Shown here piece after piece: positions 3,466 through 59,909 of a stretch of DNA of 64,000 nt (positions are counted from its first letter, which is position 1; the number at the start of each line of letters is the position of its first letter). The position numbers and the translations under genes are program-made. This DNA comes from Tubulanus polymorphus (taxonomy: Eukaryota; Animalia; Nemertea): the NCBI RefSeq assembly GCF_964204645.1, contig NC_134030.1:20606210-20670209 (forward strand), in the 5' to 3' direction. Below the pieces are notes generated by a model, which ran no database searches, was not told the origin of the DNA, and was given only the letters and a program-made list of their open reading frames with translations.

Positions 3466-12616
<9,151 letters not shown>

Positions 12617-15585: not shown

Positions 15586-17001
15586 ATGATCATTTTAAGT
15601 CTAAGCTCTGCCATTGCTGTTGACTCTGCTCAAACCTTCAATATGACTGCTGCTGCTGCTGATACTTCGGAAAGTTGGTTCAGTTCGTTTCGCAGGTCGA
15701 AACTTCTCGTCAAAATCATCACGTTCGTCGCCTTGTTGCTGCATACTTTGACGTCGTCGACGCTCGTGCCTCTTCTACCGCCCATGCTGGTTAAAATCGG
15801 GAGAACTCCGACCGGCGGCAACGCTTCATCTTTCGATTCGTTCGGCGCTAGCGACATCTACGCGCGCAACCTTACGGTAATTAGTAACTTTTCGGGCGCG
15901 TTGGGCTACATCGTTTCGGCGCGATGGATCGCCGATTTTCTATTCACGATAGTGACCGGGTTTCTAGTGGATAGATTCGGTAACCGGTGGCCCATGCTAG
16001 TCGGGGTACTGTTCAACATGGCCTCTATTTTCGGATACGCGTTTGTTCCGAATATCGCGAGTCTGATCGTATGCCGCATTTTACAGGGAATCGGCGCCAG
16101 TTTGACTTACGTGTCCAGTTTAGCGCTGATAAGCGAAACTTTTCAAGACGATTCCGAACGAAATAAGGCGCTAAGCCAAGTTTTTCTCGGATATACTGTC
16201 GGGCTACTACTAGGTTACGCAGTCGGGCCTATACTGTTCAGATTCACTAATTTGATGGTGCCGTTTTTATTACTAGGCGTGCTCGCTTCCGTCGACGGAC
16301 TTCTGAGAATACTAAAACCAGCCGATGACACTAATACGCGTCAAGATGCCAAAAATGTGAAAATTTCAAAATATTGCGTCATTTTATTTGAACCATACAT
16401 CCTGGCCGGTTTGATTTGTAATCTTTCGTTGTTTTTCGGACTCGGTATTTACCTAGCTACGGGCGCTGATTGGATGATTTACCAACTGCGAGCCGACATG
16501 TGGAAAATTGGACTAGTTTTATTTATTAGTTTGTTGTTTATGATATTAGGTGACCTACTCGCCGGTTGGTACAGTTTAAAGCACCAGTGGGTGTGGCTTA
16601 TTATAGCCTTGTGGTTATACGCATCTGGTATGGCGATCTACCCGGCATGCACTTCGATATGGCACGTGATCGGGACGGAAGGACTAGCCCGACTCGGAAT
16701 AGGTATAGGACTGTGTTGCATCAATTCGCTTCTTGCCCGTGTAACCGATCTACGATTCGGTAGCGCCACCTATGGAGTGACGTTCGGGCTGTTCGCGGCT
16801 ACTGTCGACTTTGGGTTCATATTAGGGTCACTTTTTGGTGGATTTTTGGTCGACATAATGACATTCGCCTGGCTGTACCGAGCCGAGGCTATTTTCGTAT
16901 TTTTGGCGTCTTTCAGCGCTTTAATCTATCGTAAGATGCCCGCAGCAGTAAAAGATAAAGGAGAATATGAGAAATTCCCAGCTGGCGAGAATTACGACTA
17001 G
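15586..17001 (+). CDS. SLC18A (VMAT/VAChT)-like MFS vesicular transporter, 471 aa, single coding exon
   Basis: About 12 hydrophobic segments. MFS motif A GFLVDRFGNR, RILQGIGA, LALISETFQDDSERNKAL and DLRFGSATYG align with SLC18A signature regions. Confidence 0.88.
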   Translation: MIILSLSSAIAVDSAQTFNMTAAAADTSESWFSSFRRSKLLVKIITFVALLLHTLTSSTLVPLLPPMLVKIGRTPTGGNASSFDSFGASDIYARNLTVISNFSGALGYIVSARWIADFLFTIVTGFLVDRFGNRWPMLVGVLFNMASIFGYAFVPNIASLIVCRILQGIGASLTYVSSLALISETFQDDSERNKALSQVFLGYTVGLLLGYAVGPILFRFTNLMVPFLLLGVLASVDGLLRILKPADDTNTRQDAKNVKISKYCVILFEPYILAGLICNLSLFFGLGIYLATGADWMIYQLRADMWKIGLVLFISLLFMILGDLLAGWYSLKHQWVWLIIALWLYASGMAIYPACTSIWHVIGTEGLARLGIGIGLCCINSLLARVTDLRFGSATYGVTFGLFAATVDFGFILGSLFGGFLVDIMTFAWLYRAEAIFVFLASFSALIYRKMPAAVKDKGEYEKFPAGENYD

Positions 17002-26620: not shown

Positions 26621-29600
26621 TTAACTTTTAATTTCTATTTTAAACTCAAGCGAAATGTCGGGAAAAGGTTCGGGGCAGCATGAGTAAGTAATTTCGTTTC
26701 TGGTTATATTAAGCGCAAGTAGCGAATATCTCTTATCTAAACGATAATTGCTCACATCGATATTTTGACTGCGCAGTTTCACATCCACCTGAAATAAAAT
26801 TTGAAACAATACGAATAATCAGAATAATTAGTTGTGAATCACATTAGAAACGTCTATTAATGAAGGTTTCAGCAAGTAGCCTTGAAACAAACCATATACA
26901 GTTATTGTCGTGTTAAGTGTGGATGATCAGTTTTTGTAAGCGTTCTGATAAAATGTCTAATATCTGGTGTTTGTAGTTCATTTTCAATTAGAAATGTCTC
27001 AGGTGAAGCACTGAACACATGTGAAGTGTGGACGATCAGTTTTTGAAGGTGTGCTGATAAAATGTCTAATATCTGGTGTTTGTAGTTCATTTTCAATTAA
27101 AAATGTCTCAGGTGAAGCACTGAACACATGTGAAGTGTGGACGGTCGGTTTTTGAAAGTGAGCTGATAAAATGTCTAACGTCTGGTGTTTGTAGTTCATT
27201 TTCAATTGGAAATGTCTCAGGTGAAGCACTGAACACATGTGAAGTGTGGACGATCAGTTTTTGAAAGTGAGCTGATAAAATGTCTAATGTCTGATGTTTG
27301 TAGTTCATTTTCGATTAGACATGTCTCAGGTGAAGCACTGAACACATGTGAAGTGTGGACGAACAGTTTTTGAAAGTGAGCTGATAAAATGTCTAATGTC
27401 TGGTGTTTGTAGTTCATTTTCAATTAAAAATGTCTCAGGTGAAGCACTGAACACATGTGAAGTGTGGATGACCAGTTTTTAAAGTGTGCTGATAAAATGT
27501 CTAATGTCGGGTTTTTGTAAATATGTAGTTCATTTTCAATAAAAGGGGAAGTCCTGAACATAATCGGGGAATTTTGAGTAGGGCGGCGTGGGGAATCCAA
27601 GGACTGGTTGTACATACGTATTAGGTACATGGCTTTAAGCGATGTAGGCATAACGCATTTACGGTTTTACGGGAATTTTCGGGGAAGATTTTGAAAATGA
27701 ATCATTCTCTGAGCTATACAGTGATTCTAGAAAAAGAAACGACAGCATTAATTCGCGATTTTTACTTCCTTGAAAGTGTTGTCTTGGCAAAAATAGGGAA
27801 AGTGTGGACAATCACTTTTTTTAAGTGATAAAACGTACATGTCTGCTGTCTGTGGTGTTTAGAGTGTCAATTAGAAATGGGATGAAATGAGGTCGAAGGT
27901 CACCTACATTCCCAATGCGATATATCAGGTAACATAATCAATTGATGTTTATATGTATTCGTGTACGAAGTAGATTATGTTATTTTCATATCAATTGAAA
28001 AATGATTTTTAACGATAGTCAATACCTTATTTCCGTCGTAGGTCCATGACCCGAGTTTCACTTTACAGAGAGCTATGTTTTTATCATCTACGCCACCAAA
28101 TAGGCTGATCAGACGTACAGGGGGAGCCCAGAATACCGTACCATCGTGGCTGACCATCGCTAGCGTGTCTGTCTTCTTAACCAAGCCACCAACATTACCG
28201 ATATAACCGCTACAAATAAATGACATATACTTGAAAAATTTGAGTTTGTTTTACAAAAGACTTAAGACCAAAAGTGGTCTTAAATCTTAAGACTGATCTT
28301 AAGTTGTTAGATTGGCTATAAAACTAAGTTGGTCTTAGACCGGTCTTAAGTCTAAGCCTTGACTATGGAACTGGCCCCCAAATTCTAAAATATGTCAATA
28401 TCCCGAGGACACCATCTGCAGTACTATAGTTTTTTCAATGAATATCACCGATTTTCAACAATTTTCCAATCCCTAGGACGGATGAGAATCCTAACCGGAT
28501 TATATTCAAATTACCTGTTGTACATTTCAATATCCGGGGTCCAGATGTAACGTGTCGGTAGCCTGACTAATCGGATGCCACCGTATTCTTTTGGATCCCA
28601 CCGTAATCCAAAGTCGTTCCATTCCTGAAGATCATCAAAAAATGCATATAGATATGCATATTTTAACGTTTAGTTCTGACCACATGACGTGTGGACGATA
28701 AGTTTTTAAAAGACTTCCGATAGATTTCAAATGCCATGTGATTGAGGGAGTGAGGGGCCCATGTGGCAGATTAAAATCCTTATCACTAATGAACAATCAA
28801 TGCTGCAAATAGTCTGGCGAAAATTAGCGCATTTTGCAGTTAAATCAACCCAAGAGTCGAATTTCAACCAAAGACTGTAGAACTTGGGTCTAGATTGATA
28901 GATTCAATACCTACCAGATCTAGCCATCCGTTGAACGATGCGACGGAATTTTCCACGTCCTACAAAAAATGTAAACATGTATCAGGATTATAGACGAATT
29001 TGAAACTAAAATCAGATATGAAAGTTGTAGATGAACCTAATTCAAATAATTTGATATTTTTTCATTTGATAAAGCGTAATTGATAACTGAACGACCAAAA
29101 GAGATATTTTAAACGAACTTTGGTTGTTAACATTTAGCAACTATTGCTTCAGAATTAACTAATATGTTGTAGCTAAATTTTCAGGTAAAATGACAAAAAT
29201 GGTACCCGATAATTAATCTATAATTTTCATTAATTAAAGAGATTATTCACTCTCCCTTTTTGATCGACCCTACTTTGGCGCGGATTCGAACTTGATGGCT
29301 TCGACGCTGCTACGGCACGAAACCTTGCTTAACGCATAATTTAGCCCGAGTTATTACACTTCTTATCTCCGTCGAATATCCGGCCTAATAAAACTGGCAA
29401 TCCGAGCCTACATATCAGGCCGGAATAAATGCAGTGGCTGAGTTTCGCGCCCGATCAGGTTCGAATCCCTGCCGAGGGTAGGATGAGTTGTGGATCGGTA
29501 CAAACTGATGTCTACTCACTACTTGATCGATGTGGATCAGACTGAAGCCGATTTTCACCGTTACCGCGTCTTCGACATCTTTCACTGGTCGAACGTACTT

Positions 29601-30851
29601 CTTTATCGCGGAATAATGCTTTCCCAACAGGTCGTCAATCAGCCTGAATTCATCCGGGGCTCCTTTCGAGTCTGATCAAAAGTTTAATCAAAGTCATCTT
29701 AGCATTTTAAGGGAAATTTAAAATGATGAAAAATCATTGTTATGAATTGATTGATTTTGATTGATTTGAACACTTTATTTTTCAAATATAATTTACAGTA
29801 TAGTGTACAAAGCATAATATAAAATACAGTAAATTAGACCTGGAGGGGCCTGTAGAAACTAAGGAATAGTTTGTATAAAACAGGTCCCTCAAAAGCGAAA
29901 AGAAAAAAAAGAGAAATGCAATAAAGAAAATAAATTGTCTACACGTGATGGCGTTCTAAGGAATGCAGAAGCATCCTCGATGAGGGTTGGAGCAGGCAAA
30001 TTTTTTAGCCAAATTACCGTTTCTGATATTCCATTTTCTAGTTAACCATACACGATCGTGCCCGGGGGTTTGCTTCCATTTCGATTTTCAGTTTAAAAGC
30101 TCTAAAGGCAGTAAATCCAGTAAATCTGGCATTTTTAAAGAGAAATTGTACATCTTTCGGAAAAGCGTGGGACGCTCACGGGTGGGGTCTAAAATAAGTC
30201 ACTTTCCGCTTTGATACCTGGCCATCCAATCCGAACACATCAGGGAAGTAAAATCATGAACCATTTTCTTCTTCGAAATCTAATAAAAAGGACCGTCGAA
30301 TTCCCCGTACGAAGGGAGACTATACTCTTGAAAAAAAAGGACAAGCATGAATTCACAATGAGCGTGTATGGATGATTAATAATGTCCATGCGTCTCACCT
30401 GATACTTAAAACCGGTATATTTTGAAAGATTGCAAATAGACTAATGGTAGCCTTAGAGAAGTAACAAACAGTTTTAAAAAACTAACCATAAAGATACCAT
30501 TATAAGAACCAGAGTACAAATAGAAAAGGGAATCTTTCCAGCTAATCGAGGACTAAACATTGTAAATTGTATCTATTCTACATTTCCTAATTGACACAGC
30601 CCTATACAGCACAAAGCGGCCGCGGACAAACAATTTTTGATCGATCACAAAATCGTCACCCGATGCTTCGACCGTAGTACGAGGGTCAGGACTTTCCCTC
30701 GGCAACATATCTAGATCCCATGTTTTGGGAAGTATACCCATCTACGAGTGGTCTTATACTGAATCGGATCTCCCACACAGTTTTTGAGATGCTTACCCGC
30801 AAATAGCGAAGACAGGACGAGACAGAAGACTAAACCGATTGCCGCTGCCAT
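26621..30851 (-). CDS. Soluble acetylcholine-binding protein (AChBP)-like, about 237 aa; exons 30851-30797, 29671-29520, 28959-28915, 28624-28515, 28209-28026, 26788-26621
   Basis: nAChR ligand-binding-domain motifs: RLIDDLL..Y..YVRPV, GWLDLEWND..LRWDPKEYGGI, IWTPDIEMYN, GSWTYDG and loop C YSCCPEPFPD. The stop follows the last beta-strand, so there are no TM helices. All phases are consistent (714 nt). Confidence 0.9.
26905..27545 (-). repeat. 109-bp satellite array (about 5.7 units) in the last AChBP intron
   Basis: Repeating aggtgaagcactgaacacatgtgaagtgtggacgatcagtttttgaaag with a 109-bp period. Confidence 0.95.
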
Positions 30852-31227
30852 ATTCTAATTCGTCGCGCAGAAACAGCCCGTATTCAATGAGTTCATGAAT
30901 AACGTGTTGTATACTGGCAGCGGTAAATGTGTCAATCATACATAATTGCTTGACATTAAATACTTGATAGGTTTGCACCAATTATAAATATGTATTTGCA
31001 ATAAATGCTTATGTTGTTATTTCTGCCGCAAAAAGCTGATATTTGGTTATTCAAGACAAGTCATAGACCTGACACTCAGTTACGATACACCCAACCGACC
31101 GATCGACGGATTTGATGAACTGACGGACGGACGAACCGATAAAATGACCGATGGAATGACCCTCCTATACGGAATGACACCAACTCACGTATACAATCTC
31201 CGATATAGATGAACAGGGGGACATTAG

Positions 31228-32108
31228 ACATTTTATCAGCACACTTTCAAAAACTGATCGTCCACACTTCACATGTGTTCAGAACTTCACGTGAAACATT
31301 TTTAATCGAAAATGAACTACAAACACCAGACATTAAACATCTTATCAGCACACTTTCAAAAACTGATCGTCCTCACTTCGCTTGTGTTCAGAACTTCACA
31401 TGAGACATTTCTAATTGACAATGTACTACAAACACCAGACGTTAGACATTTTATCAGCACACTTCCAAAAACTGATCGTCCACACTTCACATGTGTTCAG
31501 TGCTTCACCTGAGACATTTCTATTTGAAAATGAACTACAAACACCATTTATTAGACATTTTATCAGCTCACTTTCAAAAACTGATCGTCCACACTTCACA
31601 TGTGTTCAGTGCTTCACCTGAGACATTTCTATTTGAAAATGAACTACAAACACCATTTATTAGACATTTTATCAGCTCACTTTCAAAAACTGATCGTCCA
31701 CACTTCACATGTGTTCAGTGCTTCACCTGAGATATTTCTAATTGAAAGTGAACTACAAACACCAGATATTAGACATTTTATCAGCACACTTTCAAAAACT
31801 GATCGTCCACACTTCACATGTGTTCAGTGCTTCACCTGAGACATTTCTATTTGAAAATGAACTACAAACACCATTTATTAGACGTTTTATCAGCTCACTT
31901 TCAAAAACTGATCGTCCACACTTCACATGTGTTCAGTGCTTCACCTGAGATATTTCTAATTGAAAGTGAACTACAAACACCAGATATTAGACATTTTATC
32001 AGCACACTTTCAAAAACTGATCGTCCACACTTCACATGTGTTCAGTGCTACATGTGAGACATTTACAATCAAAATGAACTACAAACACCAGATATTAGAC
32101 ATTTTAAC
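31228..32108 (+). repeat. 109-bp satellite array (about 8 units), inverted relative to 26905-27545
   Basis: Same unit with a 109-bp period. Confidence 0.95.
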
Positions 32109-32350
32109 AACCAGGACCCACTTCCACAGTTACGAGTTAGAGTTAACATCGAGTTTAAATTAGTTCATTTTCGATGAGTTAACTCATGAGTCAAATCGGA
32201 ACTCGGAGCCTGATTTGAAGAAAATGATCAGACACTCTTCATTCGTATTACAGCAGTAAACTTCTGGAGAGGGGATGACGTCGGACTCCTGTCTTGCTTC
32301 CTATAACGAATCTATAGACAACGACAGATAGAAATAGATTTCATACTTAC

Positions 32351-34936
32351 TGTGTAATTCGACTGTGATAGCTCGTTGCTGTAAGTCTCCAGTCAGTTCG
32401 ACCTCAGCCGTACACGTATAGATTCCGTTATCGGCTTCGGTCATATTCTTTATACTCAATCCTTTATTATCGATCTGATATCTGTCACCTGGTTCAAAAT
32501 AGTATATTCATATGAAAAACATGAACTAGACTTCACGTCAAATAGGATTCAGTCATGAGAATTTTTTTTGTACGTCGACCTACCCGGTCAGTAGCGCGGG
32601 GTTTTTGTAGAGAAGGTCACGCCGAACAACCCATGAACCACCCATAATTCGAAAAGGCCCGCATTTGGACAACGAATTTCAAAGAAAATCGGATAAAATC
32701 TTTGGCCCGTCCTATAAACTCCAAGACTATTAGGCCTACAGCCGCTTAACAGGACTAGCCACAGGGAGCCTCGAAGAACGAGCGTTATGCCGTCAGATTT
32801 TGATGCTTAACTTTTGAGCGTTGTTTCAAAAATGACCCTACACTGAAAAGCCCTGCATTTCAAGGAAAATGAAGTGCTTTTAAATCAGTCGTTAATCAAC
32901 GAAACGACATGATCAGACAATCGGGACCGAGCAATCAGATGATACCGCCAGCGGATAGACTTACCGATAATAATTGGTCGTCTGGGACTGTTCTCATTTT
33001 TACGGTAAGACCACATGACCTGCGGAGCCGGCGAACCGCTCACGACGCACCTGATCAACCCGTCCTGGTTAATAGCCGGACGCTGTTCCCTCGGGCAATC
33101 ATCCCACGTTATTTTCTCTGCAATAAATATCAGAATCAAATTTAAGGTACAGACAATAGTCAGTCAAGTCTACTGATGTGAACCTATCAACTATAGGTTG
33201 TTGAAATATGAATATAATCGAAGACGCCTAGAACAAAGTTAAATGTACAAATTTAACTCGTCGGAAGTCACACGTTTTATTTAAACACTATTTCGGATCC
33301 ATTGAATTTTCAGCGAGTTCGAATAGTAAGTAAATGCAAAACTAGGAGGGTAGTTTAATAAGAGGTGTCGTACTAAATTCGTAAAGAGAATAAGTCACAA
33401 ATATGCCGTCTAAACCTGGGTGTCAAATCAGCGTAACATAAAGACAAAATAGTACTTTAGTCAACTTGACATACGAGATTTCGCTACTAGTGCATAGAAG
33501 ATTCAGCGGGCAAACTAATTAAAATCTAGTTAACTGTGATTGGATACTGAATTGATATATTAAAACCTTACTATAGATGAATAACTCTTTTTGAGCCTCG
33601 GTCGTGACGCCGCCGAGTAACGAGCGACACTTATACGTGCCGCCATCGTCCATCGTGACCGGGTAAAATATCAGTTTCAGAACGGTCAGCTGTCCCGCAT
33701 TCTGCTCTACCTTCCTGTGAGTGTCAGAAGAAAAACGGAGAAAATTTTATTAGTTCAGGTCGCGCGCTCGACTGTCGGAAGCCAGGTCGTGGGTTCGAAT
33801 CCCGTATATTATTCTAGTGTCCTCGGGCAAGACACTTATCCTCATCGCCTCTCTCCACCCAGGACTACTGTCTGTCACACCTGCTAAACTAATCTCAGAT
33901 AGAAGACGTAGTCAGATCCACGGACAGTATGCAAATTATGCAGATTAGGCAAAAAAAATCTCGGACCAACTGAAACGGTCATGTAATGAAATAAAGGTAC
34001 CACAGGATCAATATTATTAATGCTCACTAAAATGTGCGGTAAAGTTCAACGTACAGTCTATCGGTGCTGGTGATCTGTTGGGAGTCGGGGTCGAACCAGG
34101 CGAGTTGAGGATCGGTGCCCGAGTCGACGTTCAACGCTTTACAAGTGAACGCGAACGATTCGTTTACCCGTCGCACGATGACACCAGACGGCAAAATCTG
34201 CAGCTTTAAACAATCTGAAATAATAATCATCGATTAGACGAGAAGATACACAATATCCGTGTATGATGAGGACGAGAGAAATCCCACAATAACAAAGCCA
34301 AAATTGAAAGATTTTATATCAGAATGCCTGATTGTATTTGAGGAGCGACGTTTCGGCTAACAACTGTTAGCCATCATCAGGCGTACAGAAAGTACGCCTG
34401 TACTTAGACTATCAGTACGCCTGATCTTTTCAATCTTGGCTTTGTTATTGTGGGATTTCTCTCGTAATAATCATCGAATAATCACCCAAAGTAAAAAACG
34501 GAAAATTAAGGATTTTGTTGAAACCAGTTCCGCGGTGTGGGCGGGGTTAGAACAACAGGTTCATAGTAATATATTTGCCTATGACCCCACCGTGGCTCGT
34601 CAAGACTGATTATAGCGACGATTTTCGCCCGTCCCGGCCAAATTCAGCAAACATTACTAGCAGAAAATCAGTTTGATACCAACACGATGTTACGAAAAAC
34701 CCGTTAAAACGATGGCAGCTTTCGGTCGTTGGTCTCATTTCCTTCTAGTAAATCGGCGCGGTAAATACGATTGCTGATTGAGTGGGTCACCTTCATCGGT
34801 CATTACGCATGCGTCGATTTCGTCGATTCCCGCTCAATGTCTACAGCGAGAGCCTCAAAGAGTTTCTGGGATGCTTACCCACAAAAGACGAAGACAGCAC
34901 GAGACAGACGACTAAACCAAATATTGTCACAGCCAT
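32351..34936 (-). CDS. NCAM/fasciclin-2/ApCAM-like Ig cell-adhesion gene, signal peptide + Ig1 + Ig2 only; exons 34936-34879, 34214-34055, 33714-33572, 33117-32965, 32488-32351; open at the 3' end (phase 1 donor)
   Basis: Ig1: SFAFTC..LAWFDPD..DDGGTYKC. Ig2: KITWDDCPREQ..LIRCVVSGSPAPQVMW..LSIKNMTEADNGIYTCTAEV. All junctions are GT-AG and phase-consistent. Confidence 0.85.
33755..33865 (+). mobile_element. tRNA-derived SINE fragment
   Basis: B-box GGTTCGAATCC followed by gtgtcctcgggcaagacacttatcctcatcgcctctctccacccagg, a conserved SINE central-domain-like segment. Confidence 0.6.
34234..34464. mobile_element. Penelope-like palindromic element (family B) with a hammerhead motif and 13-bp TSD
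   Basis: Inverted arms gagagaaatcccacaataacaaagcca / tggctttgttattgtgggatttctctc. Minus-strand core CTGATGA-t-ggctaaca/gt/tgttagcc-GAAACGTC at about 34345-34384. TSD TAATAATCATCGA at 34221-34233 and 34465-34477. Confidence 0.75.
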
Positions 34937-35078
34937 ATTTTCCATCGTTACAGAAACAACTCGTCATCGGTTGACGATAGACAAATTGTACACAGGCATC
35001 GGTAAATATCATCATCATTATACGTAATTACTTGGCATGATTACTGGATAACGTAATCAGCAATCGTGTATATCGACC

Positions 35079-35081
<3 letters not shown>

Positions 35082-35128
<47 letters not shown>
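35082..35128. repeat. (TA)n microsatellite
   Basis: Direct observation. Confidence 0.95.
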
Positions 35129-35134
<6 letters not shown>

Positions 35135-35760
35135 GCTATTTCTATTTCGCAATTACTTCACAACGATAATTCGACAGAAATGAAATACCATGGAATAGAA
35201 TTATTGGGAAGTAGAATATATCATTGTCTGTACCAACTCCCTTAGCACCAAGAGAGTATATATAATTCGGCTGAAATATATTCCGTAGAGTAGAATTATT
35301 TGCTTTGGGTAGCAGAATATATCATTGTTTATACCGACTCCCTTAGATGATTTGTACCGCAATCCCATACGATCTACTTTCCGTGTCCGAACAACCCTTG
35401 AAAACAAATCTGGCGACTCGTGTACCCGGTATTAATCTAACTTCCCTTCATATGTTGCTATCGTGGTAAGGTTAATGTTGGCCATGGTAAGGTAAGGTAA
35501 CGCTTATTGGATATTTTCAACCCTCGGGCTATCATAAAATCAAAATGGTATATCATTGGAATGTTGAAAAGTACCAGTTCACCGGTTCAGTTTCGAGGAG
35601 GATTGTATTGTATTTTGTATTTGTAATCTCATAAAGAACAGTGGTAACAAATATAGTAACACATAATATGAGCAGAGATAATAATGAGATTGCCGGGGAC
35701 CGGAAGAATCCGGAGATTGCCGAGTCGGGTCCCTGTCAATGACAAATAAAGGAAAACTGT

Positions 35761-37185: not shown

Positions 37186-39571
37186 ATGGCGAACGCTTAC
37201 AATAGATTCGAATACATTTTACTTATCGTACTCTGTCTCATCTCCCATACCACTGGAACATGGTTTCAAAAAATCACCAATCAACAACCGCCCGAATGCC
37301 CGATCGGCGACCAGAAATCGAACGATGCAAAGTCTTCGCACAGCCTGACGAAACGCGTAATCGGTAACGAAGAAGTGCGCAGTGTTTTGGAATGTGGAGC
37401 CGTTTGTTTAAACGAGCACAAATGTTCGCTGATGTCCATCGACAGTGAAAGTCATTGCCGGGTGTATGACGCCACCAATAACGAACTGTGTAGCCTGCCC
37501 AGTGGTCAACGCGTATACTACAAGGTAACGGCGAAATATTTTCATTTCTATCGGTCGTATCTATCACTTTTAGAGCATGATATTTCTTGACCATCGACTG
37601 AATTTTACAAAAATTATGGCCGAATTGTATTTTGTAAATGCCTAATGATGATGTGTACGACTAACTGACATCGCTGTTTAGTGTTTATTATCATCAGTTA
37701 ACCATTCGAACGCACAGTGTAAACTAGCGAAATCCTCGCGGAAACTAGACGTGTTTTCATCCCAGAGCATCAGATTCGTTGATTCATTGAATTAGAAAGT
37801 AGAAGCATTTTAGAATGTATAGATATTATGAGCTCACCGTGGATAGATTTGATCTGTTGGGAACTTGGATAACCTGTGCCCGGAGAGACTGGATTCACCT
37901 GCTTAAGGTGAAGACGTGTTAGGTCTACCGGTGAAAGTAGGGAGATACAAATATGTATTACAATTGTATTTTGTTTTTCTCTTCCAATTGACGCGTTGTT
38001 GATACAGAAATGTATTGAATGTTCGAAGATACCTGAAATATGTTTTCGACTTCACTTGTGGACAACGTTTCGTGTTTTCAACTATTATCTGAGCTTGGGT
38101 CGCCGCACGGTGGCGTTGTCCGTTTGTCCGGCCCCAAGGTTCACAATTGGTTTTGGAATAAGTTGTTTTTTTTTAAATTTCCTACTGCATATAATACGCA
38201 AACCTGTTCGCCCTTGTATCTGATCACTCGTTTACAAGTTAATCGTTGGGGAATGGTAGAATCATGGTCGTTTTTCTTTAAGTTGTATAAATAAATTTGG
38301 TTTTGTGTTTTTTAAATTTTTCAAACACCCTCAACCCGCTAAGCGCCACGCAGGGCATTATAAGCAAGTTCGATGTTTCTTCTTCCCAATGGGATAGAAA
38401 CCAGAGAAACTCTGTCGCCACCAGGGTTCGAACCCTGGATTGATGAGACCAGTGACCGGCGGCTTAAACCACTCGGCCACTGCGCCTCTCAAATTGGTTT
38501 TCTTTTCATAACCAGTCTAGAGGATAACGTTTCTTTTTCTCGAAGGAACTTGCCTTACGTAGCAGAGCTATGAAGTAACTAAAACAAAACAATTTCGTCG
38601 GGCGTGAAAGTGCATATCTTTATTTACGAAACGTGGCGACGAATGCACGTCGAAGGTCAAACCCTTTGGGAAAGATGCTAACGAGCTAATGCGTGAATGG
38701 CCCCTCTTATTCATTCAACGAGCTAATTTTGAATCGGGATTCGTCGGATTATTCGTTTCAGATATCAAATCAGGACGGACAGGCCACGAAAACTGAACCC
38801 GGTAAGAACCCCAGACATATTCACTAACTATTTAATTAACATCAATCTAATTCATCTCTCTTTCTACTGCACACACATCGTTAAACACTTTTTCCGAATA
38901 AAATTTCAGCCAAACCACAGTCAAGTAGATACCGATACTTTTTCGATTTTGAAAACGTGGACGTCGACCGTGGACTCGTGTTCGGCGAGGGAGCCAATAT
39001 GACGACGCATGACGATAACACGGTGAAACTTAAGACAAGCAAAGGAGTCGATAACGGAAGAGCTTTAGGATCATGGAACGGAAAGTCGCCATTTCTGCAC
39101 TTCGGTAACCTAAGGGGTGACATTGCTCAGAAGAACTACTCGATCTCGTTCCTATATCGTGGTCGCGGATACGTTACTGTGTACACAAGACTCTCTGGAC
39201 AGCATCGAATAGGGAAATTCGCACACATGAGTCGCGGTATCGTCTATTTTGCACCGTATAGCAGGTCACAGGAGAACGGTTACTGCGTAGGTCCGGCGCC
39301 GCTAAAAATCTCACATAAAATATACAAAATAAACAAAAGGAGTTTGAAGGGTAAGAACTGGGTTTTCGTGCGATGTACAAACGGGATTATGTACCTTGAT
39401 GGTGTAAAAGTGAAATTCGTCCGCAACGCAGGGGCGTTTTCGCCAGTTTCCTTTAGTTCTGCGAGTCCTGTTACTCCTAAAGAAGTCGTTGGGATTGTCA
39501 ATGAAACTCAATACACCGTTGCGACTCGTGATGCGCTCATCGATAATTTTACAATAGAAGTTTGGAATTAA
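37186..39571 (+). CDS. Secreted PAN/apple + laminin G/concanavalin A-like protein, about 346 aa; exons 37186-37524, 38762-38801, 38910-39571
   Basis: Signal peptide. PAN pattern SVLECGAVCLNEHKCSLMS..HCRVY. LamG-like YFFDFEN..GRALGSWNG..NYSISF..NGYCVGP..LIDNFTI. Phases 0/1 are consistent. Confidence 0.75.
38320..38487 (-). mobile_element. tRNA-derived SINE; other copies at 2275-2463 and about 58890-58955
   Basis: Minus strand has A-box TGGCCGAGTGG, B-box GGTTCGAACC, a shared 3' body and an A-rich tail. Confidence 0.8.
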
Positions 39572-39683
39572 GGGATTCACCAGTGGGTAAATCTACTCGA
39601 CACTGCAAGGGATAAAAGTTTCTACGGATCTGTCGTCAGAATATTTTGAATATTCATAACTCGATAACGGCAACATAAGGAAT

Positions 39684-41449
39684 CGTGACGAACGCGTACA
39701 ACCTACCTATTTTAATATATTTTAGTTATCGATTGAGACCCGGTTTCAGAAATTCACTCGACTGCCCGAATATCAGATCGATCACAAATGGGACGTTGGC
39801 AATTCTTTACAGGACTGGACGAAGAACGAAATAAGCAACAAAGAAGGCGTTCGAGAATGTGAAGCTGTTTGTATAAATGAAACGAAATGTCCGCTTATAT
39901 CAACCGACAATGAACGCCTTTGTCATCTGTATGACGTCACCATCAACGAATCATGTAGCCTGCCTAGCGATCAACACGTGTACTACAAGTTAACAACGTG
40001 ACTCGATTGTTATACATTTTTGAGTTAGAATTTCTTTCGAATGTTATGTTCTGATCGTCTTTAAAAAACATAAATGGGCATCTTAAACCTATTGATTCAA
40101 TTTCTTATCCATCAGAACTAGTTCGGTAGCCGTCAATTGCTAGTGACCAGTGCTTTAACCACTTTAACATTTTAGAACCAATGCCTTAGACTGGTTTTAA
40201 ATGGGAGCATTGGCTGCGTGCAACTGGACCTTGTTAATGACAGTAAAGTGGATATATCTGCTAGATTGAACCAATCCCCTCATCAAGAAACCAATGTACC
40301 TTTAAAAAAATCCGTGTTTTCAGATCATAGAGTCAGAGAAATTGCCTAATCCATTTCAACTGATCCAACCGTGGCTTCGTTATTGTGTGATGTCTCTCGT
40401 TATCATCATACACGGATATTGTGTATCTTCTCGTCTAATGATTTGTGAATGTATCCTGATCTGTTGAAATATCCATTTCAGGTAGATGATAATCAGCGAA
40501 AATCAAAGAACACGACAAACGGTAGGATTGAATTATTTCAAATAATCTTATATAGTAGTTTCACAAAAAATGAAAGTAATCTGAAATCAGTTATTCTGAT
40601 CTATTCTGATTTAGTAGTTATTCTTTACTTAGTTTGATATTTACAGTAGTCGTAGTTAGGTTTGTTCTGTTCTGTGCCATCGCCATCGCCATCGTCGCAA
40701 GATCACATAATCCATTTGAAAATCCTACAAATACAATTTCTTCATGTTTATTTGTGTCTAAAGCCACACGACACATCAACATTTCAGGTGCCGAACCGTT
40801 GTCGCACCGATTCCAATATTTTTTCGACTTCGAAAATGTGGACGTCAAACGCGGAATCGTGTTCGGCGAGGGAGCCAATATGACGGCGGATGACGGCCGG
40901 AAACGGGTCGAGCTAATGGTAGGCAAAGACGGTGTCGATAAAAGTCAAGCAATCATATCGAGAAGCAGTGCCATTGCATTACGTTTCGCCAACAAGAGGG
41001 ATGAAATTGCTCCAAAAAATTATTCGATTTCGTTTATATTTCGTGGTAAAGGTTTCGTATCTATATTTGCGAACTTTGCTAAACCGAATCCAGGGGAAGG
41101 AACAAGAAACACAAGAAGATACTTCACGGTATATTTCAAATTGGATTCGAGATATGCCACTAACGGCAGGTGCTTAGGTCCAACGTTGAAAACAGAATCA
41201 CACTTCAAGATTGATAAAACGCTCCTGAATAAAAAGAAACTTATCTCCGTTCGATGTTCGAACGGGATTATGTACGTCGATGATGTAGAAGGGAAATTAG
41301 TCAGAGAAGTTAAACTGCCCGAAACCGATACTTCAAGGATAGCGAGCACTGCTGGTCCCGAAGTCGCTAACATAATGAAAGAAACGCTATACGCCGTTAA
41401 TATTTATCAAGCGCTGATTGACAACCTAAAGATTGACGTTTGGAATTAG
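39684..41449 (+). pseudogene. Paralog of the PAN-LamG gene: decayed exon 1 (about 39684-39989), intact exons 40482-40521 and 40788-41449
   Basis: The start codon position reads GTG, the signal region is out of frame with the PAN frame, and the donor after YYK reads TT instead of GT. The LamG exon is open and similar to 38910-39571. Confidence 0.6.
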
Positions 41450-43312: not shown

Positions 43313-43895
43313 ATGAAGTTAGTTTTCCTCGTCACGATGGCCCTTGTGGCCGTGGCTGCTGCGGGTTAGTATAATATTTGACAGTATGAAGAAAATCGAG
43401 TCCATAACCCTGCATTCTAATTTGACCATTTTTACATTTCTCCGTTAAGGCGATGGCTATGGTTACGGCTATGGTGATGTGACTGTGGTCGAAGAGTATG
43501 GCTATGGTGGTGACTACGAAACTGGTTACGGCTATGGTGGTGAATACGACGATGGCTATGGCTATGGTGGTGAATACGACGATGGCTACGGCTATGGTGG
43601 TGAATACGACGATGGCTACGGCTATGGTGGTGAATACGACGATGGCTATGGCTATGGTGGTGAATACGACGATGGCTATGGCTATGGTGGTGAATACGAC
43701 GATGACTATGGCTATGATGGTGAATACGACGATGGCTATGGCTATGGTGGTGAATACGACGATGGCTATGGCTATGGTGGTGAATACGACGATGGCTATG
43801 GCTATGGTGGTGAATACGACGATGGCTATGGCTATGGTGGTGAATACGACGATGGCTATGGCTATGGTGGTGAATACGATGATGATTACTACTAA
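43313..43895 (+). CDS. Secreted acidic Gly/Tyr-rich protein A, 165 aa, (GYGYGGEYDD)x12; exons 43313-43364, 43450-43895
   Basis: Signal [17 protein letters not shown], phase-1 intron, 30-nt coding repeats, upstream TATA, non-coding first exon, 3'UTR intron and AATAAA at about 44530. Confidence 0.9.
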
Positions 43896-44589
43896 TAAGC
43901 CAAAGGTTAGTACTCAAGTCGAATAATGCGTTTGATAATGATTTATCGAGTTTGTACATGTACGTAATATCGACATTCATGGTGAAATAGTTCTTGAAAT
44001 ACATACCGAATATTACATAAATATGATCTAAGCAATGGATTTCTACAAGACACCGTATGAAAAACAAGCTTGACGCCCACTCTCTAATAATTTGGATGAC
44101 ATAAAAGGATTATATTCGACCTAAATTGAAATTAAGTAGAACCGCGTTCACTTGGGACTGTCAGCAGGTGTCAGACAATTGTTAAAAAAACGGAGTACGT
44201 AAAGAGGGGTAACAAGTCTATTGAGTAAACAAGTGAATGATTACATAATCAATGGGTGGTGTTAGGTTTGCGTGCTCTTCTCATTTCACGATAATGCCGA
44301 TATTGCAATAATGCAAGGGCAACATATTACTTAACACGTGAAAAGAAAATGATAGATATATTTGTGTTGATGAAAATGTAAATGTTTCGTATGTTGAATT
44401 TGTTGATGCTAAAGTATTCTGTGATTTCAGATGAATTCGTTCTATTTCAGGGCCGCTCACAATTGATGCTGATGACATCAAACCATTCATATCGATGCTT
44501 CTTGTTGCCCCGAATTCATCGCTTACGTCAATAAAAGCCATTATCAAATGAAAGAACTTCTTTTAAGATCTTAACTGAAAAGGAATAAA

Positions 44590-45075
44590 AACTTCAAACA
44601 AATCTACTTCAAACACCAGATATTAGAAATCCTGCATTAATACTGTTAACAATTATCATTTTCACTTCAAAATGAATGACATAACAGACGATTGTTCAGT
44701 ACACCTTTACTCTACATCGCTTCAGACTCTTTTAGAATTTTATACGAGACATTATTTTCATTAAAAATGAAGGACAAACAGCAGAAATGAGACATTTTAT
44801 CAGCACACTTTCAAAAACTGATCGCCTAAAGTTGACATGTGTCCAATACTTCATCTGAGACATTTTTATTTGAAAAAAAAACTACATGCACCAGATATTA
44901 GACATTTTATCAGCAAACATTCAACAACTGATCGTCCTCTCTTCACATATGTTCAGTACTTCACCAGATATTAGGCATTTTATAAAGACACTTTCAAAAA
45001 AACTGATCGCCCACACTTCACGTGTGTTCAGACTTCGGTCGAAAGATTTTGAGTTGAATATGAACGACAGACATT
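44590..45075 (+). repeat. Degenerate 109-bp satellite copies
   Basis: gacattttatcagcacactttcaaaaactgatcg motifs. Confidence 0.75.
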
Positions 45076-46095
45076 AGAATTTCGCACTTTCAAAAAGGAT
45101 TCTTATCGATACAGGCGTGAGATTTGGATTGTCAACACGGATCACATCATCATTATCCCTACGTTGATATGATTCCAGAGTACTAACAGTATCTATTCGA
45201 GGAATGCGTTTGGCTTGACGGGATATTCCTCCCATTTGAATAGTGAGCAACAATTGTTTGATAGTGGGATATATTCCATGGAACTTACAGTAGGACATCG
45301 CCGTTGATAGATCCCCAACATCAATGACGACATTAAATGGGTTCCCTTTTCCGAGATCAAAACAGGCCGGCCGGATCGAAAGAAGTTCCCAAGACATTTA
45401 AGTTTAGGCCGATCACCATTACATATGTCACCACCCAGCTGTTCAATTTTACAAATGTACAATACCGCAATATCCCTACCCAATATTTCAGTTTGGGCAT
45501 TACGAACAGCTGTTGCGAACTTTCAAAACGACTATAACAGTCTTTGAAACGCTATTAACCTTCACAATATTGGAGGTATGCGGAATGCACTTGCAAAGGC
45601 GATATCAACGTGATACCAGATTTATAGAAGTGATTATGGGTATGGGAACAGGTGGTTGTGGGTGACAGTCGAAGTGGACAAAGGTTGTTGGCACCGGTAT
45701 GCCAGGTAGTCGTGAAATATAGTACGTGAAACCAGGTCGTGGCGGACGCAAGGGCATTGAGGACGACAGTGAGTTAGGTAAAAGGTCATGGAGGGTTTGT
45801 TGCCTAATACTGGGACTCGAGGGTTCGAAACTGGGATGCCAGGTCATGGAGTTCCCCAGTTTTGCATTAGGCTGCTGGGATGACTTGGGTGATTAGTGAG
45901 CTTGAATTTGGGATATCCAATCTATAAGTGCTTGGGCTCGGTACAACTTGTCGCAATGCCAACTGGGTGGTTTAGCGGGTTAAATGTGCAGCTGGCTTCG
46001 AAACACCAGTGAATTCCTGTGTTGAGAATAATGATATATAAATATTATAAGTTTATTTCTTTACTCAAGAGATACAATACAGACATCTCTATTAG

Positions 46096-46442
46096 ATAAC
46101 ATCCTCCCCCGGCAGGGATTCGAGCCTGATGGCATCGAGATTGCCACGGTACGAAACCCTGCCATAATCGACCGTGTGCGCAGATACATGCGCAGTTTAG
46201 ATGATGTGATTTTTAGCCAATCAGAAATCCCGTTTTATTTTAGCCCGGGTTTTCCCATTTATAGTTCTTCCTTGAAATGTCCTTCAGCGACTATACAACG
46301 AGCAATCTGATTGGTGCCGCCAGTTTTCGTTCAGAAAGCTGAGTGTACCTGCGCACCCGGTCTACTGATGCAGGGGTTCGTGCCGTGGCTGAGTGTAGCG
46401 ATGCCATCAGGTTCGAGTCCCTGCAGAGGGAGGATGTTAGAT
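46096..46442. mobile_element. MITE with long imperfect inverted arms containing B-box-like GGTTCGA motifs
   Basis: aacatcctcc..gcagggattcgagcctgatggcatcg..ccacggtacgaaaccctgc versus gcaggggttcgtgccgtgg..cgatgccatcaggttcgagtccctgc..ggaggatgtt; inner pair ccaatcaga/tctgattgg. Confidence 0.7.
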
Positions 46443-46638
46443 AAATGAAAAAAAAAATTACAGAAAGTGCGGGATAATTGAAAGGAATGGTGTGTTAGTA
46501 CTCGATTATGTAAATGTGTTGATCGTCGAAGTCAGTGACGTCACTACGCAAATGTCTGACTACGAACTAACCTATGTTGCAGAGCATAAATCATTCCGGA
46601 CATAGGAAGCAAAATAGAGTAAGGGAACAGATTATCAG

Positions 46639-46680
46639 CACCTGTTGAAATGATTCATGCGATGGCTTAGGTATATAAAA
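46639..46680 (+). promoter_or_regulatory. GY-gene promoter module, copy B
   Basis: CACCTG-ttgaaa-TGATTCAT...TATATAAAA. Confidence 0.7.
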
Positions 46681-46869
46681 CCACATTGAAGAAAAATCGA
46701 CATCTCATCTCGGAAAAGAACAGCCTCCAACTTTTTAAGGTATTTTGTAAAGTGTTCGCTTGTTTCATCTGCCAATTCACATTTGTTCTAGCGTAAACAC
46801 GTTCTTTGATGAGAAACACGTTTTTTTTGTAAATGAGGGCATTTTCAATGGTCATGTTTCTAATGCAGG

Positions 46870-47199
46870 ATGAAGTTAGTTTTCCTTGTCATGATGGCAA
46901 TTCTGGCCATAACCCTAGCTGGTACGTAATGCCAAGCATTCGCCTAATTTGATAACTCGAATCCTGTATATAATCAACCGAAATATCTTGTTCTCCTAGG
47001 CCGCAGAGAGTATACTTACGACTACAATCGTGGTTATGATCCATACTACGGCCGCGGGGGAGCTTACGAAGGTCGTGGAAAGTATGGCGTGCGTCGTAAT
47101 CGTGGCTACGGAGGTGGTAGATACAAACCAAGACGTGGATCATACGACCGGGAGATATACGATGATGGATATGGCAGTGGGTCATATAGAGATTTTTGA
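46870..47199 (+). CDS. Secreted basic Arg/Gly/Tyr-rich protein B, 83 aa; exons 46870-46921, 47000-47199 (absent from the ORF track)
   Basis: Signal MKLVFLVMMAILAITLA, mature GRREYTYDYNRGYDPYYGRGGAYEGRGKYGVRRNRGYGGGRYKPRRGSYDREIYDDGYGSGSYRDF*. Same gene architecture as its paralogs. Confidence 0.88.
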
Positions 47200-50100
47200 G
47201 GCGTGTCAATGTAAGTATATCAACGTTGAATACATTTTTTTCACAATACCGGCTATTCTGTCAGTTGTATTGTCATCGAGATCATCCTCATTTAACATCT
47301 ATTGTTTGATATTAATATAAGGTCCAAACGATGTAAGTTTCACTTTTCTGCCTCAGAGATTTGGTATAGTTTTATTTTGTCAGATCATCTCTCGCCTCAA
47401 GTTGAGTCCTTCGTTGCTGCAGTAGTTGATGCCATAGTGCACGCTAGCGACATCTGATGAGACTCCATTGCCAGATTCGATGTCCTACTGCACGCTAGCG
47501 ACAACTGTACGATCCTCATTTCGACAAGTAGCCTCAACTTTTTGCTGCAGTAGTTGATGTCCTGCTGCACCCCATCGGACCTGGTGGAGACTGGCCACGT
47601 AGTGTTAGCATCGTGTGCTTCAGTAACGCCGAACTAACCTTATTTGAATCGATCGGATGATTGAGACATTCTGTTTCTATATTTCAGGATTGTTCCAAAG
47701 AAGGGAGGGAAGCTCAACAGAACCGGTTGAAAGCTCATTCGACATTATCGATAGATCGTCTGAATAAAAACCAAATATCTAAACGAAACGATTAATGTAG
47801 TGTTGAATTGTATTCATTTTATAAATGGTGCAGGGCACTTTGCTGAAACAAGGAAAAGACATATTCATTGTCAAGTTTCTTTTTCACAACTATGAATTCA
47901 TTGTCTGTATTTAACCAATTCGTGCAACCTTCCAATGACTTTCCTCACAATGAATGCGATAATTCACAGTAGGAGACACAGAGAATGAGTATTCTATCGA
48001 AATTATTGTCATCATTGATATTTCAAAGTCCAATAAAACGTACAAACAACGAGCAATAATCATAGAGAAATAACGCCGTTTTATCTAATCCCGGTGATTA
48101 TATGTTACGTGCCACATTCCGCAATCAATGATTGATATTAGAATGATAAAGTGGTTCGAATGATCAAAAGGTTCAAATTATAAGACGGCCAATTATTGAT
48201 GATATGACCCGTGTTATTAGAATAATAGACACCATACGGGAATATGGGTAAGAAGTAACGGGTAAGATGAAAGTTGGGCTCGTGGAAATCAAGAAAATAA
48301 AGGGATATAACTGATTCATATTTGATATGCAGCACACAATAATGAGTGCTACATAAGTGCTTAAGACACTTCTACCAGTTGTAATCACCGAAAATTCACA
48401 TGATTTGATGAAATAAATGAAAGGCATCGCAAAGAATTCGCGAACAAACAGTCGAAACAACTCTCGGTAATCAACCAGGGCTCAAAAATTGATGACAGCG
48501 CATCCGAAGATAATAGTTTTCACGGAACGAATCATTTGATCATTGCACTAATTTCACACCGGATCTTCAACTGCCACAGCAACATTTCCCGATTGCATAT
48601 CAACGTCCGAACTCCGACTACTCGTTTTTGCCATCGTAGCATTCCAATTCCACGGTATGGGAATATCAACATTTTAAGCCACCTGACTAGGGCCTGCCAC
48701 AGAAACATTCTGACTCAAATAGGACATCTATTAATATTTATATCTATATAAGACTGATGGCGCACTAGTACCACCTAGAAGTCGTTGAACACCGATCACA
48801 ACACGTTTTCTGACCAAGGACAAAGTTTGCGGTGATAGATTAGGCTCGGGTAAACCGTTCTGTCACTGGTGCTAAATTTGTCACGTGCCCAAAACGCATT
48901 GCGACAAGTCTGTGCCAAAGTTTCAGCACGGACTGGTAAAATTGTGCAGTGTGAATGATTAAGTGAAGTGAACAAAATTGCTTGCCATATTATCGTTAAG
49001 CGTTCTACCCAGGCGTGGTATCAATGTATCACTCGGTTGGTGGTGCCGGCCAGTTTGATCGTCTCTGCGTTATCCCGGCTCTTAATGGGGTCGGCGCAAA
49101 CTAGATGGCCCTACAATACACTCAGTTATACGTTGTAAACGTTACAGTCAACCCCGCACTCGTCATCGAATCAGTCGTATCATCACATCTCTCGTATAAT
49201 AATTTTAGTCCCAAGTCGTATTTACACGTAAGTCGTACAGATTTTAGAAGCCAAATCTTCTGATTTCATTCAAAATACCTCGCGTAAGTCGTAGCCCGAT
49301 ATGCCGGCAGCAGATAAAAATACACAACACTATTGTCTGTGTAAGTGTTTAGACAATTACGATGTAAATTTCTTGTGACGTTGTCTGCGTGGTGCAAGTG
49401 TCCGCTTTAATTGATTGATGGTGGGTAGATTTTAGCGAGATAGGATCTGCACTGTCAGCTCAGCTGGAATCTAAGCATCGTATATATCGTATTTTCATCA
49501 CGGGTTATTCGAGGAATTCGTATAAAACCACGACTTATAGATAGCTCGTGAAAATACGACATACTCGTGAAACCTACATCACGTAAGTCTAAGAAACCAT
49601 CAGTCCCGAGGGCTGATGCGGTAGTTCATTTTCAATAAACTTTGAACTGGATTTTTAGGCTCCCAAATGGAAATGTTGTCAAATAAGTCATCAATTAATT
49701 AGATTGACGTTCGCAATTGTGTATGGCATTGTTTTATTAGAAATTGATTTCACTAATGAGAAAAGTTGACTCGAATTTAATTGAAATGTAGAATAAATTG
49801 AAGCGCGGCAACCGAGTAACCACTAGCGAACCTGGCGGATCCTCGCCTGCCATAAGTGGAATCCTCGATTGCCTCTGTAGCATCGATTGCCACGGCATCC
49901 GAAGAGAAGAATCCTAAAACTATGAATATGAAAAAAAAACTATTTTCATTCTCAGTTACAGAATGAATTTCATCGATTTGATTTATCTTGCATAATAAAT
50001 TGGTTCAGGGATTTTGATACATGATTGTTATCAGATAATATGTAGTCAGTATAACAATAATATAAGGGCGACGAATTTATATATCCACGTTTTTGAATAA

Positions 50101-50776
50101 GAGAAACGTGACCAATCAGGCACACCTGTATCGGAAAACACGATATGATTTATAAAGTCGGCTACCTGCCCAGTGGCTGCAGTAAAACTCGAAGATAGCA
50201 TGTGTTTTAGTCATATTTATTGTGGAGCGCCACATATTGTGAATACAGGTTTGAACCTTACGGTAAACCTTAGAATGTGATTTATGTACTCATTTATTTT
50301 GCGAATATCTAGTAATAATAATAAGTAATAAAAATTAAATTAGTAATCAAGTAACATAGGAGTGAAAGGTCATTTCAGGATTACATCGTCATTAACCAAA
50401 CGAACAAGCTTTTTTCACCGATTTAATTGTTTTATTCGGTTCTACTGAGTATCATGATCATTGCAAGCAGATGAATTTAAGGAACTATCAAAAGTAAAAA
50501 ATCAAATTAGTTATCGATAATTGGACATTTTGATATTGCATATGAAATGTCATGCAGTAAAACTTACCCTATTAACATATAAAAACAATATGAAACTGGT
50601 TTGGGTACATAAAGTAAACACAAATTTAAAGGTTTCAGCCTACGATCAGGACGAGGTGATCATTCAGTTCAAAAATATTCAGTTAAATTGCTGAAAAGAT
50701 ACCGATGAGAATAAATCTTCAGCTTCAATATATCAATATTGTTAACGGCAGTCATAGCACAATCGGAAATAAATTG

Positions 50777-50818
50777 CACCTGTTGTTGTGATTCATGTCC
50801 GCGTAAAGAGTATATAAA
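50777..50818 (+). promoter_or_regulatory. GY-gene promoter module, copy C
   Basis: CACCTG-ttgttg-TGATTCAT...TATATAAA. Confidence 0.7.
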
Positions 50819-50962
50819 CCGGCTTCGAGGTGCAACAAGACATCTTATCTCGGAATAGAGCTCAAACCACGTAAGAACGAAGACTAGTTTTAGTAGCCAC
50901 TAAATATCATATTTCGAGACACACGTTCGAAAATTGTTTAGAAAAATCTTTTCTCTTACAGG

Positions 50963-55619: not shown

Positions 55620-55659
55620 CACATGTGGAAGTGATTCATGGGCTGGTAAAGTATATAAA
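55620..55659 (+). promoter_or_regulatory. GY-gene promoter module, copy D
   Basis: CACATG-tggaag-TGATTCAT...TATATAAA. Confidence 0.7.
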
Positions 55660-55802
55660 TCGATTCCACAACTCAATTCGACATCTTATCTTGGAAAAGA
55701 ACTCATAACTGCAGGTAAGGACTTTCTGTTGATAACTAAAACATTTTTAATATTAGCGATATATCTCTCTCTCTTTAACGTGGTTTGTTTATTTTCAACA
55801 GA

Positions 55803-59800: not shown

Positions 59801-59868
59801 AAGCCATTTCCAGAAAAAAATTATCAATTACTGACAACTTCCTGTGCAGTTAAAAAAGTAATTCCACG

Positions 59869-59909
59869 CATCTGTTGTAGTGATTCATGTGCCGGTAAAA
59901 GTATATAAA
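59869..59909 (+). promoter_or_regulatory. GY-gene promoter module, copy E
   Basis: CATCTG-ttgtag-TGATTCAT...TATATAAA. Confidence 0.7.

Follow-up and report, generated by a model that had tools for sequence, protein, structure and literature searches.

We analysed a locus on the minus strand of a 64,000-nucleotide stretch of the genome of the nemertean Tubulanus polymorphus (contig NC_134030.1, positions 20,606,210 to 20,670,209; hereafter the window), at which two similar first exons precede exons of two different protein families. Read in the direction of transcription, the locus consists of exon B, a putative signal-peptide exon; four exons (Ig1a, Ig1b, Ig2a and Ig2b) encoding two immunoglobulin (Ig) domains of the NCAM/Fasciclin II type; exon A, a second putative signal-peptide exon; and five exons (E2 to E6) encoding the remainder of an acetylcholine-binding protein (AChBP). 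A protein search with E5 retrieved a 100% identical RefSeq protein of 343 amino acids (aa), XP_074653086.1, which is the only public gene model of the locus. It maps exactly onto Ig1b, Ig2a, Ig2b and E2 to E6, skips exon A, and carries Pfam matches to both Ig and the nicotinic-receptor ligand-binding domain (LBD; Neur_chan_LBD, PF02931). The whole appears to be a chimeric gene with two copies of its first exon, produced by exon shuffling and the partial duplication of another gene, and its combination of domains appears undescribed. All searches were run exon by exon or with XP_074653086.1, and continuity of the reading frame was checked by junction codons and by sums of exon lengths.

E2 to E6 are an AChBP-like gene, predicted to encode a secreted nicotinic-receptor LBD without the channel part. 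Taken exon by exon, the matches to PF02931 cover profile positions 3 to 213, and the best PDB matches are AChBPs and the extracellular domains of alpha subunits (E 4e-39); a CHRNA7-FAM7A chain is also among the PDB matches. Five nicotinic acetylcholine receptors (nAChRs) matched in tblastn by their extracellular domains only, and no transmembrane exon was found anywhere in the window. Moreover, XP_074653086.1 lacks PF02932, which every nAChR match carries. The tyrosine of loop A (Y225), the tryptophan of loop B (W282) and three residues of loop C (Y323, C325 and C326, numbered as in XP_074653086.1) occupy invariant or near-invariant columns, and the second tyrosine of loop C is replaced by phenylalanine. 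In the alignment to AChBP the first cysteine of the Cys-loop is also a phenylalanine (near position 28100, in E5) and the second cysteine alone is kept. The signature disulfide is therefore absent, which bears on how far that bond is needed for folding. An AlphaFold2 model of XP_074653086.1 gives block-mean pLDDT values of about 84 to 96 over most of residues 131 to 343, with dips at 141-150 and about 221-240. In the Ig part pLDDT is mostly below 50, owing to a lack of aligned relatives, and we therefore draw no reading of the domain junction from the model. An AATAAA motif lies at 26414, on the 3' side of the AChBP exons.

Exons A and B are two copies of one module and do not resemble each other by chance. 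They are identical at 45 of 55 aligned nucleotides (nt), with a single 3-nt gap, and the first intron bases that follow them at 16 of 18; both stop one base into a codon and continue with GTAAGCATC. The first-pass annotation had placed them at 34936-34879 and 30851-30797 on the minus strand, given these same match counts and reported that both end in phase 1. Recounting reproduced every one of these figures, and the phase-1 acceptors at 34214 and 29671 fit both exons. The homology is wider than had been described, however. Besides the exon it takes in about 155 nt on the upstream side and about 23 nt of intron, so that 30774-31006 and 34856-35088 align in blastn at 165 of 240 positions (69%, E 1e-27); searched against the whole window, the pair scores E 5e-27 and is the only such pair in it. 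The upstream part alone is 67% identical (112/166). A 30-nt core of the exons (28/30 identical) and the donor region (16/18) lie far above this value, which suggests constraint on both copies. With up to three mismatches allowed, the core occurs in the 268-Mb genome at the sites of exons A and B only, and a reversed-pattern control gave no hit. Likewise, genome DNA searches with the exon A module, and with the exon B module plus its intron, recovered no third copy of the module. The genome matches of that intron correspond to a dispersed repeat at 34610-34811, of which copies with 70-79% identity lie on at least seven other contigs, and not to module copies.

By inspection, each of the two exons encodes a methionine followed by a hydrophobic core, a putative signal peptide. 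Exon A could be used only as a first exon, since an in-frame TAG stands two codons before its ATG. Ahead of shared exons, the locus thus holds two first exons that are homologous, agree in splice phase and have separate flanks, and both upstream flanks are putative promoters. In contigs from a second sample or individual, exon A and its donor are identical to those of the window, and six differences are concentrated within 46 bp just upstream of it (30875-30920). Conversion of A by B in that second haplotype was considered and rejected after the variants had been worked through by hand, since just two of the six variant bases equal B.

The Ig part is colinear with Ig1-Ig2 of NCAM2 (2wim, E 2e-19, residues 2-121) and also matches NCAM1 (1qz1, 1epf); at the level of Pfam, Ig2b gives an I-set match (E 1.7e-5) and Ig1a a weak Ig_3 match. 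Searches of the worm's own genome with the Ig exons found a single other locus, at C6:20.297-20.306 Mb. It belongs to an NCAM-like gene, the parent hereafter, which occupies C6:20.285-20.306 Mb on the contig and strand of the window, at a distance of 340 kb. Its translations show a complete gene with Ig1 to Ig5 and two FN3 domains, each Ig domain being split over two exons. The window copy and the parent are identical at 520 of 558 exonic nt (93%; 38 differences): Ig1a at 143 of 153 nt (C6:20305781-20305935), Ig1b at 113 of 126 nt, and Ig2a at 142 of 150 nt and 45 of 50 aa (C6:20297926-20298075). The intron flanks can be aligned as well, at 67-79% identity with many indels, which shows that DNA and not mRNA was copied. 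Beyond about 17 nt from the Ig2b donor, and beyond about 60 to 90 parent bases upstream of Ig1a, homology to the parent is lost.

No frameshift or stop interrupts the 594 nt of Ig exons in the window, the sole exonic indel is in frame, and each of the eight splice sites is preserved, among them the Ig1b acceptor and an Ig1a donor of unusual sequence, CT|GTACGT. To judge from the substitutions relative to the parent (dN 0.042, dS 0.185, omega 0.23, binomial p 5e-5), the window copy is under purifying selection. Reading the open reading frame (ORF) lists of the window revealed no further Ig or FN3 exons on the minus strand, and no terminal 3' exon for the Ig part was found in the window. The five Ig domains, two FN3 domains and membrane anchor of a full-length NCAM are thus reduced here to four exons for Ig1-Ig2. 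With only these four, the copy is a fragment and not a member gene of the NCAM/Fasciclin II family, and the Ig exons are, by these comparisons, a 3'-truncated partial duplicate of the NCAM-like gene. The earlier designation of an "NCAM/Fas2-like gene" in the window must consequently be replaced by a four-exon Ig1-Ig2 fragment that is in frame with E2 and for which no terminal exon of its own was found.

Within the 6.5-kb intron that separates Ig1b from Ig2a, the parent has a second, diverged Ig1b-like exon (C6:20302359-20302481, 56% aa identity to Ig1b), which is a candidate for mutually exclusive splicing. In the window copy there is one Ig1b exon only, and the corresponding intron measures 0.45 kb.

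The two parts can be joined without any break in frame, and every exon reads open. The phase-1 end of Ig2b and the first two bases of E2 complete the codon A|AC (Asn). The lengths of exons B, Ig1a, Ig1b, Ig2a, Ig2b and E2 to E6 add up to 1311 nt, or 436 aa and a stop, and those of exon A and E2 to E6 to 714 nt, or 237 aa and a stop. The RefSeq model, which comes from an independent annotation pipeline, makes the same junction, from the Ig2b donor at 32351 to the AChBP acceptor at 29671. Its residues 1-27 correspond to 33653-33573 in Ig1b and its residues 29-79 to Ig2a. Since this places the start at an internal ATG (33653), in the middle of an Ig domain, the 5' end of XP_074653086.1 is unsupported, and Ig1a and exon B upstream extend its reading frame. 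The model also bears on a possibility that the first-pass annotation had named as fatal to its proposal, namely that AChBP transcripts start from another exon and that 30797-30851 is either left unspliced or joined to distant NCAM exons. RefSeq does put another exon before the AChBP exons and leaves exon A out; this is a gene model, however, and not transcript evidence. Word searches with XP_074653086.1, either whole or with residues 1-124, returned only the protein itself as an Ig plus LBD protein among candidates of 189-600 aa. We also found no paper on fusions of Ig domains to pentameric ligand-gated ion channels, on AChBPs with Ig domains, on nemertean AChBPs or on the annotation of the T. 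polymorphus genome.

Features of the composite Ig-AChBP locus in window coordinates (columns: feature, position, strand, details)
Upstream flank of exon B, putative 5' untranslated region and core promoter	34937-35088	minus	homologous to exon A flank
First exon B	34936-34879	minus	58 nt, ATG and signal-peptide-like MAVTIFGLVVCLVLSSSFV, phase 1, donor GTAAGC
Ig1a, first half of Ig domain 1	34214-34055	minus	acceptor cag|AT, phase 1; copy of NCAM-like gene
Ig1b, second half of Ig domain 1	33714-33572	minus	acceptor acag|G as in parent
Ig2a	33117-32965	minus	phase 1-1
Ig2b	32488-32351	minus	phase-1 donor A|GTAAGT (...CAC A|GTAAGT)
109-bp satellite array, between Ig fragment and exon A	31223-32106		Tandem Repeats Finder (TRF): 8.1 copies, 92% matches
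Upstream flank of exon A, putative 5' untranslated region and core promoter	30852-31006	minus	homologous to exon B flank
First exon A	30851-30797	minus	55 nt, MAAAIGLVFCLVLSSLFA, phase 1, donor GTAAGC
E2 (AChBP exon 2), N-terminal helix and beta-1	29671-29520	minus	phase-1 acceptor fits both exon A and Ig2b donors
E3 (AChBP exon 3), 45-nt mini-exon	28959-28915	minus	DVENSVASFNGWLDL
E4 (AChBP exon 4), loop D/A region	28624-28517	minus	Neur_chan_LBD match E 2e-10
E5 (AChBP exon 5), Cys-loop region, loop B Trp	28211-28026	minus	PDB AChBP matches E 6e-6
E6 (AChBP exon 6), loop C vicinal Cys-Cys, beta-10, stop	26788-26621	minus	stop codon 26623-26621

The first exons of the closest AChBP paralogs point to the family from which the module came. 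These paralogs form a tandem group of four at C4:21.87-21.885 Mb (21871600-21885000), with one gene per approximately 3.5 to 4.5 kb. Upstream of each lies one conserved candidate first exon consisting of an ATG, a hydrophobic stretch and a donor (MAVTTVGLLILLSCFVS, MAVTTVGLL...), which is near-identical among the four. In three of these genes the candidate exon ends in phase 1, the remaining gene having a GTGGG donor, and the distance to the phase-1 acceptor of exon 2 is about 310 nt. Exon B shares MAVT--GL with these exons (8 of 17 residues identical, a value reached in 861 of 200,000 shuffles, p 0.004), and identity over the first 29 nt is about 69%. Measured against this outgroup, exon A is the derived copy, with Val3Ala, Thr4Ala and the loss of one codon, and exon B shows one silent change in the alignable part. 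For the NCAM-like parent, neither the 60 kb surrounding the gene nor the 40 kb further upstream yielded an A/B-like module. Low-stringency blastn and tblastn searches and an exon scan likewise detected no signal-like exon resembling A or B over the 54 kb upstream of the parent. An exon duplicated together with the Ig exons, and thus 93% identical to its source, would be detectable genome-wide, and none was found. Comparing the first exons of other AChBP and NCAM paralogs was the check originally proposed for establishing the donor, and it points to an AChBP-type module. Thus, there is moderate evidence, drawn from the comparison of a short peptide, that the module is a first exon of the AChBP family. 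In that case it was the Ig fragment that became placed behind the 5' module of an AChBP gene, and no NCAM module was captured by the AChBP gene. The C4 paralogs also have a short Cys-loop, in which the two cysteines are kept.

Taken together, the arrangement is in our judgement best described, with somewhat more confidence than doubt, as one composite locus with duplicated alternative first exons and not as two genes. The AChBP-like gene would hold two diverged 5' modules, B and A, each comprising about 155 nt of flank, a signal exon and a donor. Between them would lie four phase-compatible Ig1-Ig2 exons, copied at the DNA level with their intron flanks from the NCAM-like gene. Transcripts starting at B would be spliced from B through Ig1a, Ig1b, Ig2a and Ig2b to E2-E6 and encode a signal-Ig1-Ig2-LBD protein of 436 aa; those starting at A would join A directly to E2-E6 and encode a plain AChBP of 237 aa. 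The locus can probably make both a plain and an Ig-tagged AChBP in T. polymorphus. We infer that both promoters fire and that Ig2b is spliced to E2 in vivo. The Ig block may have been inserted between first exons that were already duplicated, or it may have arrived in the very rearrangement that duplicated the 5' module. Neither order is favoured by the noncoding identities of the two duplications, which overlap (67% for the A/B flanks, 67-79% for the Ig introns). It had been proposed that one gene captured the promoter and signal exon of the other by local duplication. This stands insofar as the exons and their flanks are local copies, placed before the Ig and the AChBP exons respectively; two independent genes of unrelated families are not supported.

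Two separate genes could nevertheless account for much of the locus. B would then drive a short secreted two-Ig protein that ends in the satellite, either by read-through past Ig2b (tail SKYEIYFYLSLSIDSL, then a stop) or in an unrecognised terminal exon, and A would drive an ordinary AChBP. The two first exons come with separate upstream flanks that are homologous to each other, exon A is placed as in the paralogs, a few hundred nt before exon 2, and AATAAA motifs occur on the minus strand at 31879, 31661 and 31552, in the satellite 3' of Ig2b. That no terminal exon was found speaks against this arrangement, as do the strong, parent-conserved Ig2b donor A|GTAAGT in frame with E2 and the joining of the two parts in the RefSeq model. 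The purifying selection on the Ig exons is compatible with either arrangement. We regard two separate genes as unlikely.

Two further explanations keep only one first exon in use. If the chimera alone were made, exon A would be what is left, in decay, of an original or duplicated first exon of the AChBP gene, and would be intronic in B transcripts. It is indeed skipped by RefSeq, differs from the C4 outgroup by two aa changes and a codon deletion where B has one silent change, and lies next to the cluster of single-nucleotide polymorphisms (SNPs) at 30875-30920. Its ATG, frame, hydrophobic core and donor are nevertheless intact despite about 33% divergence of the flank, and it is unchanged in the second individual, so that we hold a mere relic to be quite improbable. 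Conversely, if a plain AChBP starting at A were the only product, the fragment comprising exon B and the Ig exons would not be expressed and the RefSeq chimera would be an artefact of prediction. The oddly internal start of the RefSeq model is what such an artefact might look like, and RNA support was not found in the run set examined. Silent exons fit poorly, however, with an omega of 0.23 and intact splice sites. The Ig exons have no frameshift or stop and only one, in-frame, indel, the splice sites were kept while the introns diverged, and exon B retains more ancestral states than exon A. Therefore, an expressed plain form beside a silent B/Ig block strikes us as very improbable.

Several observations weigh against one composite locus with two first exons in use. 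The runs that cover the locus are three DNA runs, and one small run from 2015, guessed to be RNA, contains nothing at the locus. In this set no splice joints were seen over 29350-35150 (5,801 letters), only genomic contigs and repeat-driven joints. XP_074653086.1 uses neither A nor B and may be an ab initio model. B transcripts could terminate prematurely at the AATAAA motifs of the satellite, and exon A, with its derived changes and the six SNPs upstream, could be decaying. Finally, the likeness of exon B to the C4 first exons concerns 17 residues and makes for moderate evidence.

What the long form might do can be approached from its two halves. In the AChBP pentamer the N-termini of the subunits are at the top, where extensions are tolerated, and NCAM uses Ig1-Ig2 for homophilic contacts. 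This makes the long form a possible acetylcholine trap that docks on cells carrying NCAM. Because the Ig arms are 93% identical in nucleotide sequence to the worm's own NCAM-like molecule, docking on NCAM-bearing surfaces is conceivable. We tentatively envisage, as a picture more doubtful than likely, a young, lineage-specific secreted protein. It would form a pentameric acetylcholine-binding ring with five NCAM Ig1-Ig2 arms able to dock on NCAM-bearing surfaces. The duplicated first exon would keep the untethered form in production from a second promoter, and the ancestral and the derived product would be encoded at one locus.

Comparison with known systems shows which features are shared and which are particular to this locus. 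As in the AChBPs of molluscs and annelids (Lymnaea, Aplysia, Bulinus, Capitella), a nicotinic extracellular domain without a transmembrane part is predicted to be secreted, and the vicinal cysteines of an alpha-type loop C, the loop A tyrosine and the loop B tryptophan are present. In contrast to those proteins, the first Cys-loop cysteine and the second loop C tyrosine are both phenylalanine, and the present protein is from a nemertean and may carry two N-terminal NCAM-type Ig domains. With NCAM and Fasciclin II it shares colinear Ig1-Ig2 domains, each over two exons, whereas Ig3 to Ig5, the FN3 domains and the membrane anchor are lacking and the signal exon is not that of NCAM.

Chimeric genes of the CHRFAM7A type arise by partial duplication, and modules with phase 1 at both ends undergo exon shuffling. 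The T. polymorphus locus resembles the CHRFAM7A type in that a partial DNA-level duplicate stands in one frame with a gene of the nicotinic-receptor family, the inserted block being phase 1 at both ends. It differs in that the partial partner is the one from outside the receptor family, the AChBP-like gene being complete, and in that the 5' module is duplicated, so that the ancestral product may persist beside the chimera. Variable tandem first exons are known from the protocadherin and UGT1A loci. There, as here, diverged copies with flanks of their own could splice to common downstream exons, but the present locus has just two copies that encode a signal peptide only, and it is the captured exons in between that would make the isoforms differ.

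If the long product is real, it combines NCAM Ig1-Ig2 with a channel-less nicotinic LBD, a combination that we have not found described. If the composite locus is read correctly, it would illustrate the birth of a gene by exon shuffling in which donor, recipient, inserted block and duplicated module are all still recognisable within 340 kb, and it would offer a testable case of a new isoform arising without loss of the old one. If one first exon alone is used, the locus would be of local interest, as an ordinary gene that is chimeric or has been mis-modelled.

Repeats are abundant around the locus. A second array of the 109-bp satellite lies at 26911-27519, in the orientation opposite to that of the array between Ig2b and exon A, so that the two arrays flank exon A and E2 to E5; the word depth of the satellite in the DNA runs is about 5e4. 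The satellite also occurs in and around the NCAM-like parent, for example at C6:20287066-20287744, and it may have been involved in the rearrangement. By read depth, further high-copy repeats lie at 34200-34590 and 33620-34005.

On the plus strand, other content of the window was read by eye from the ORF lists at 3466-10500, 15586-17001, 38957-41449 and 43479-61242. It includes DOMON or dopamine-beta-monooxygenase-like exons, an intronless transporter-like ORF of 471 aa, two intronless paralogous ORFs of 204 and 271 aa, and several Gly/Tyr-rich repeat ORFs.

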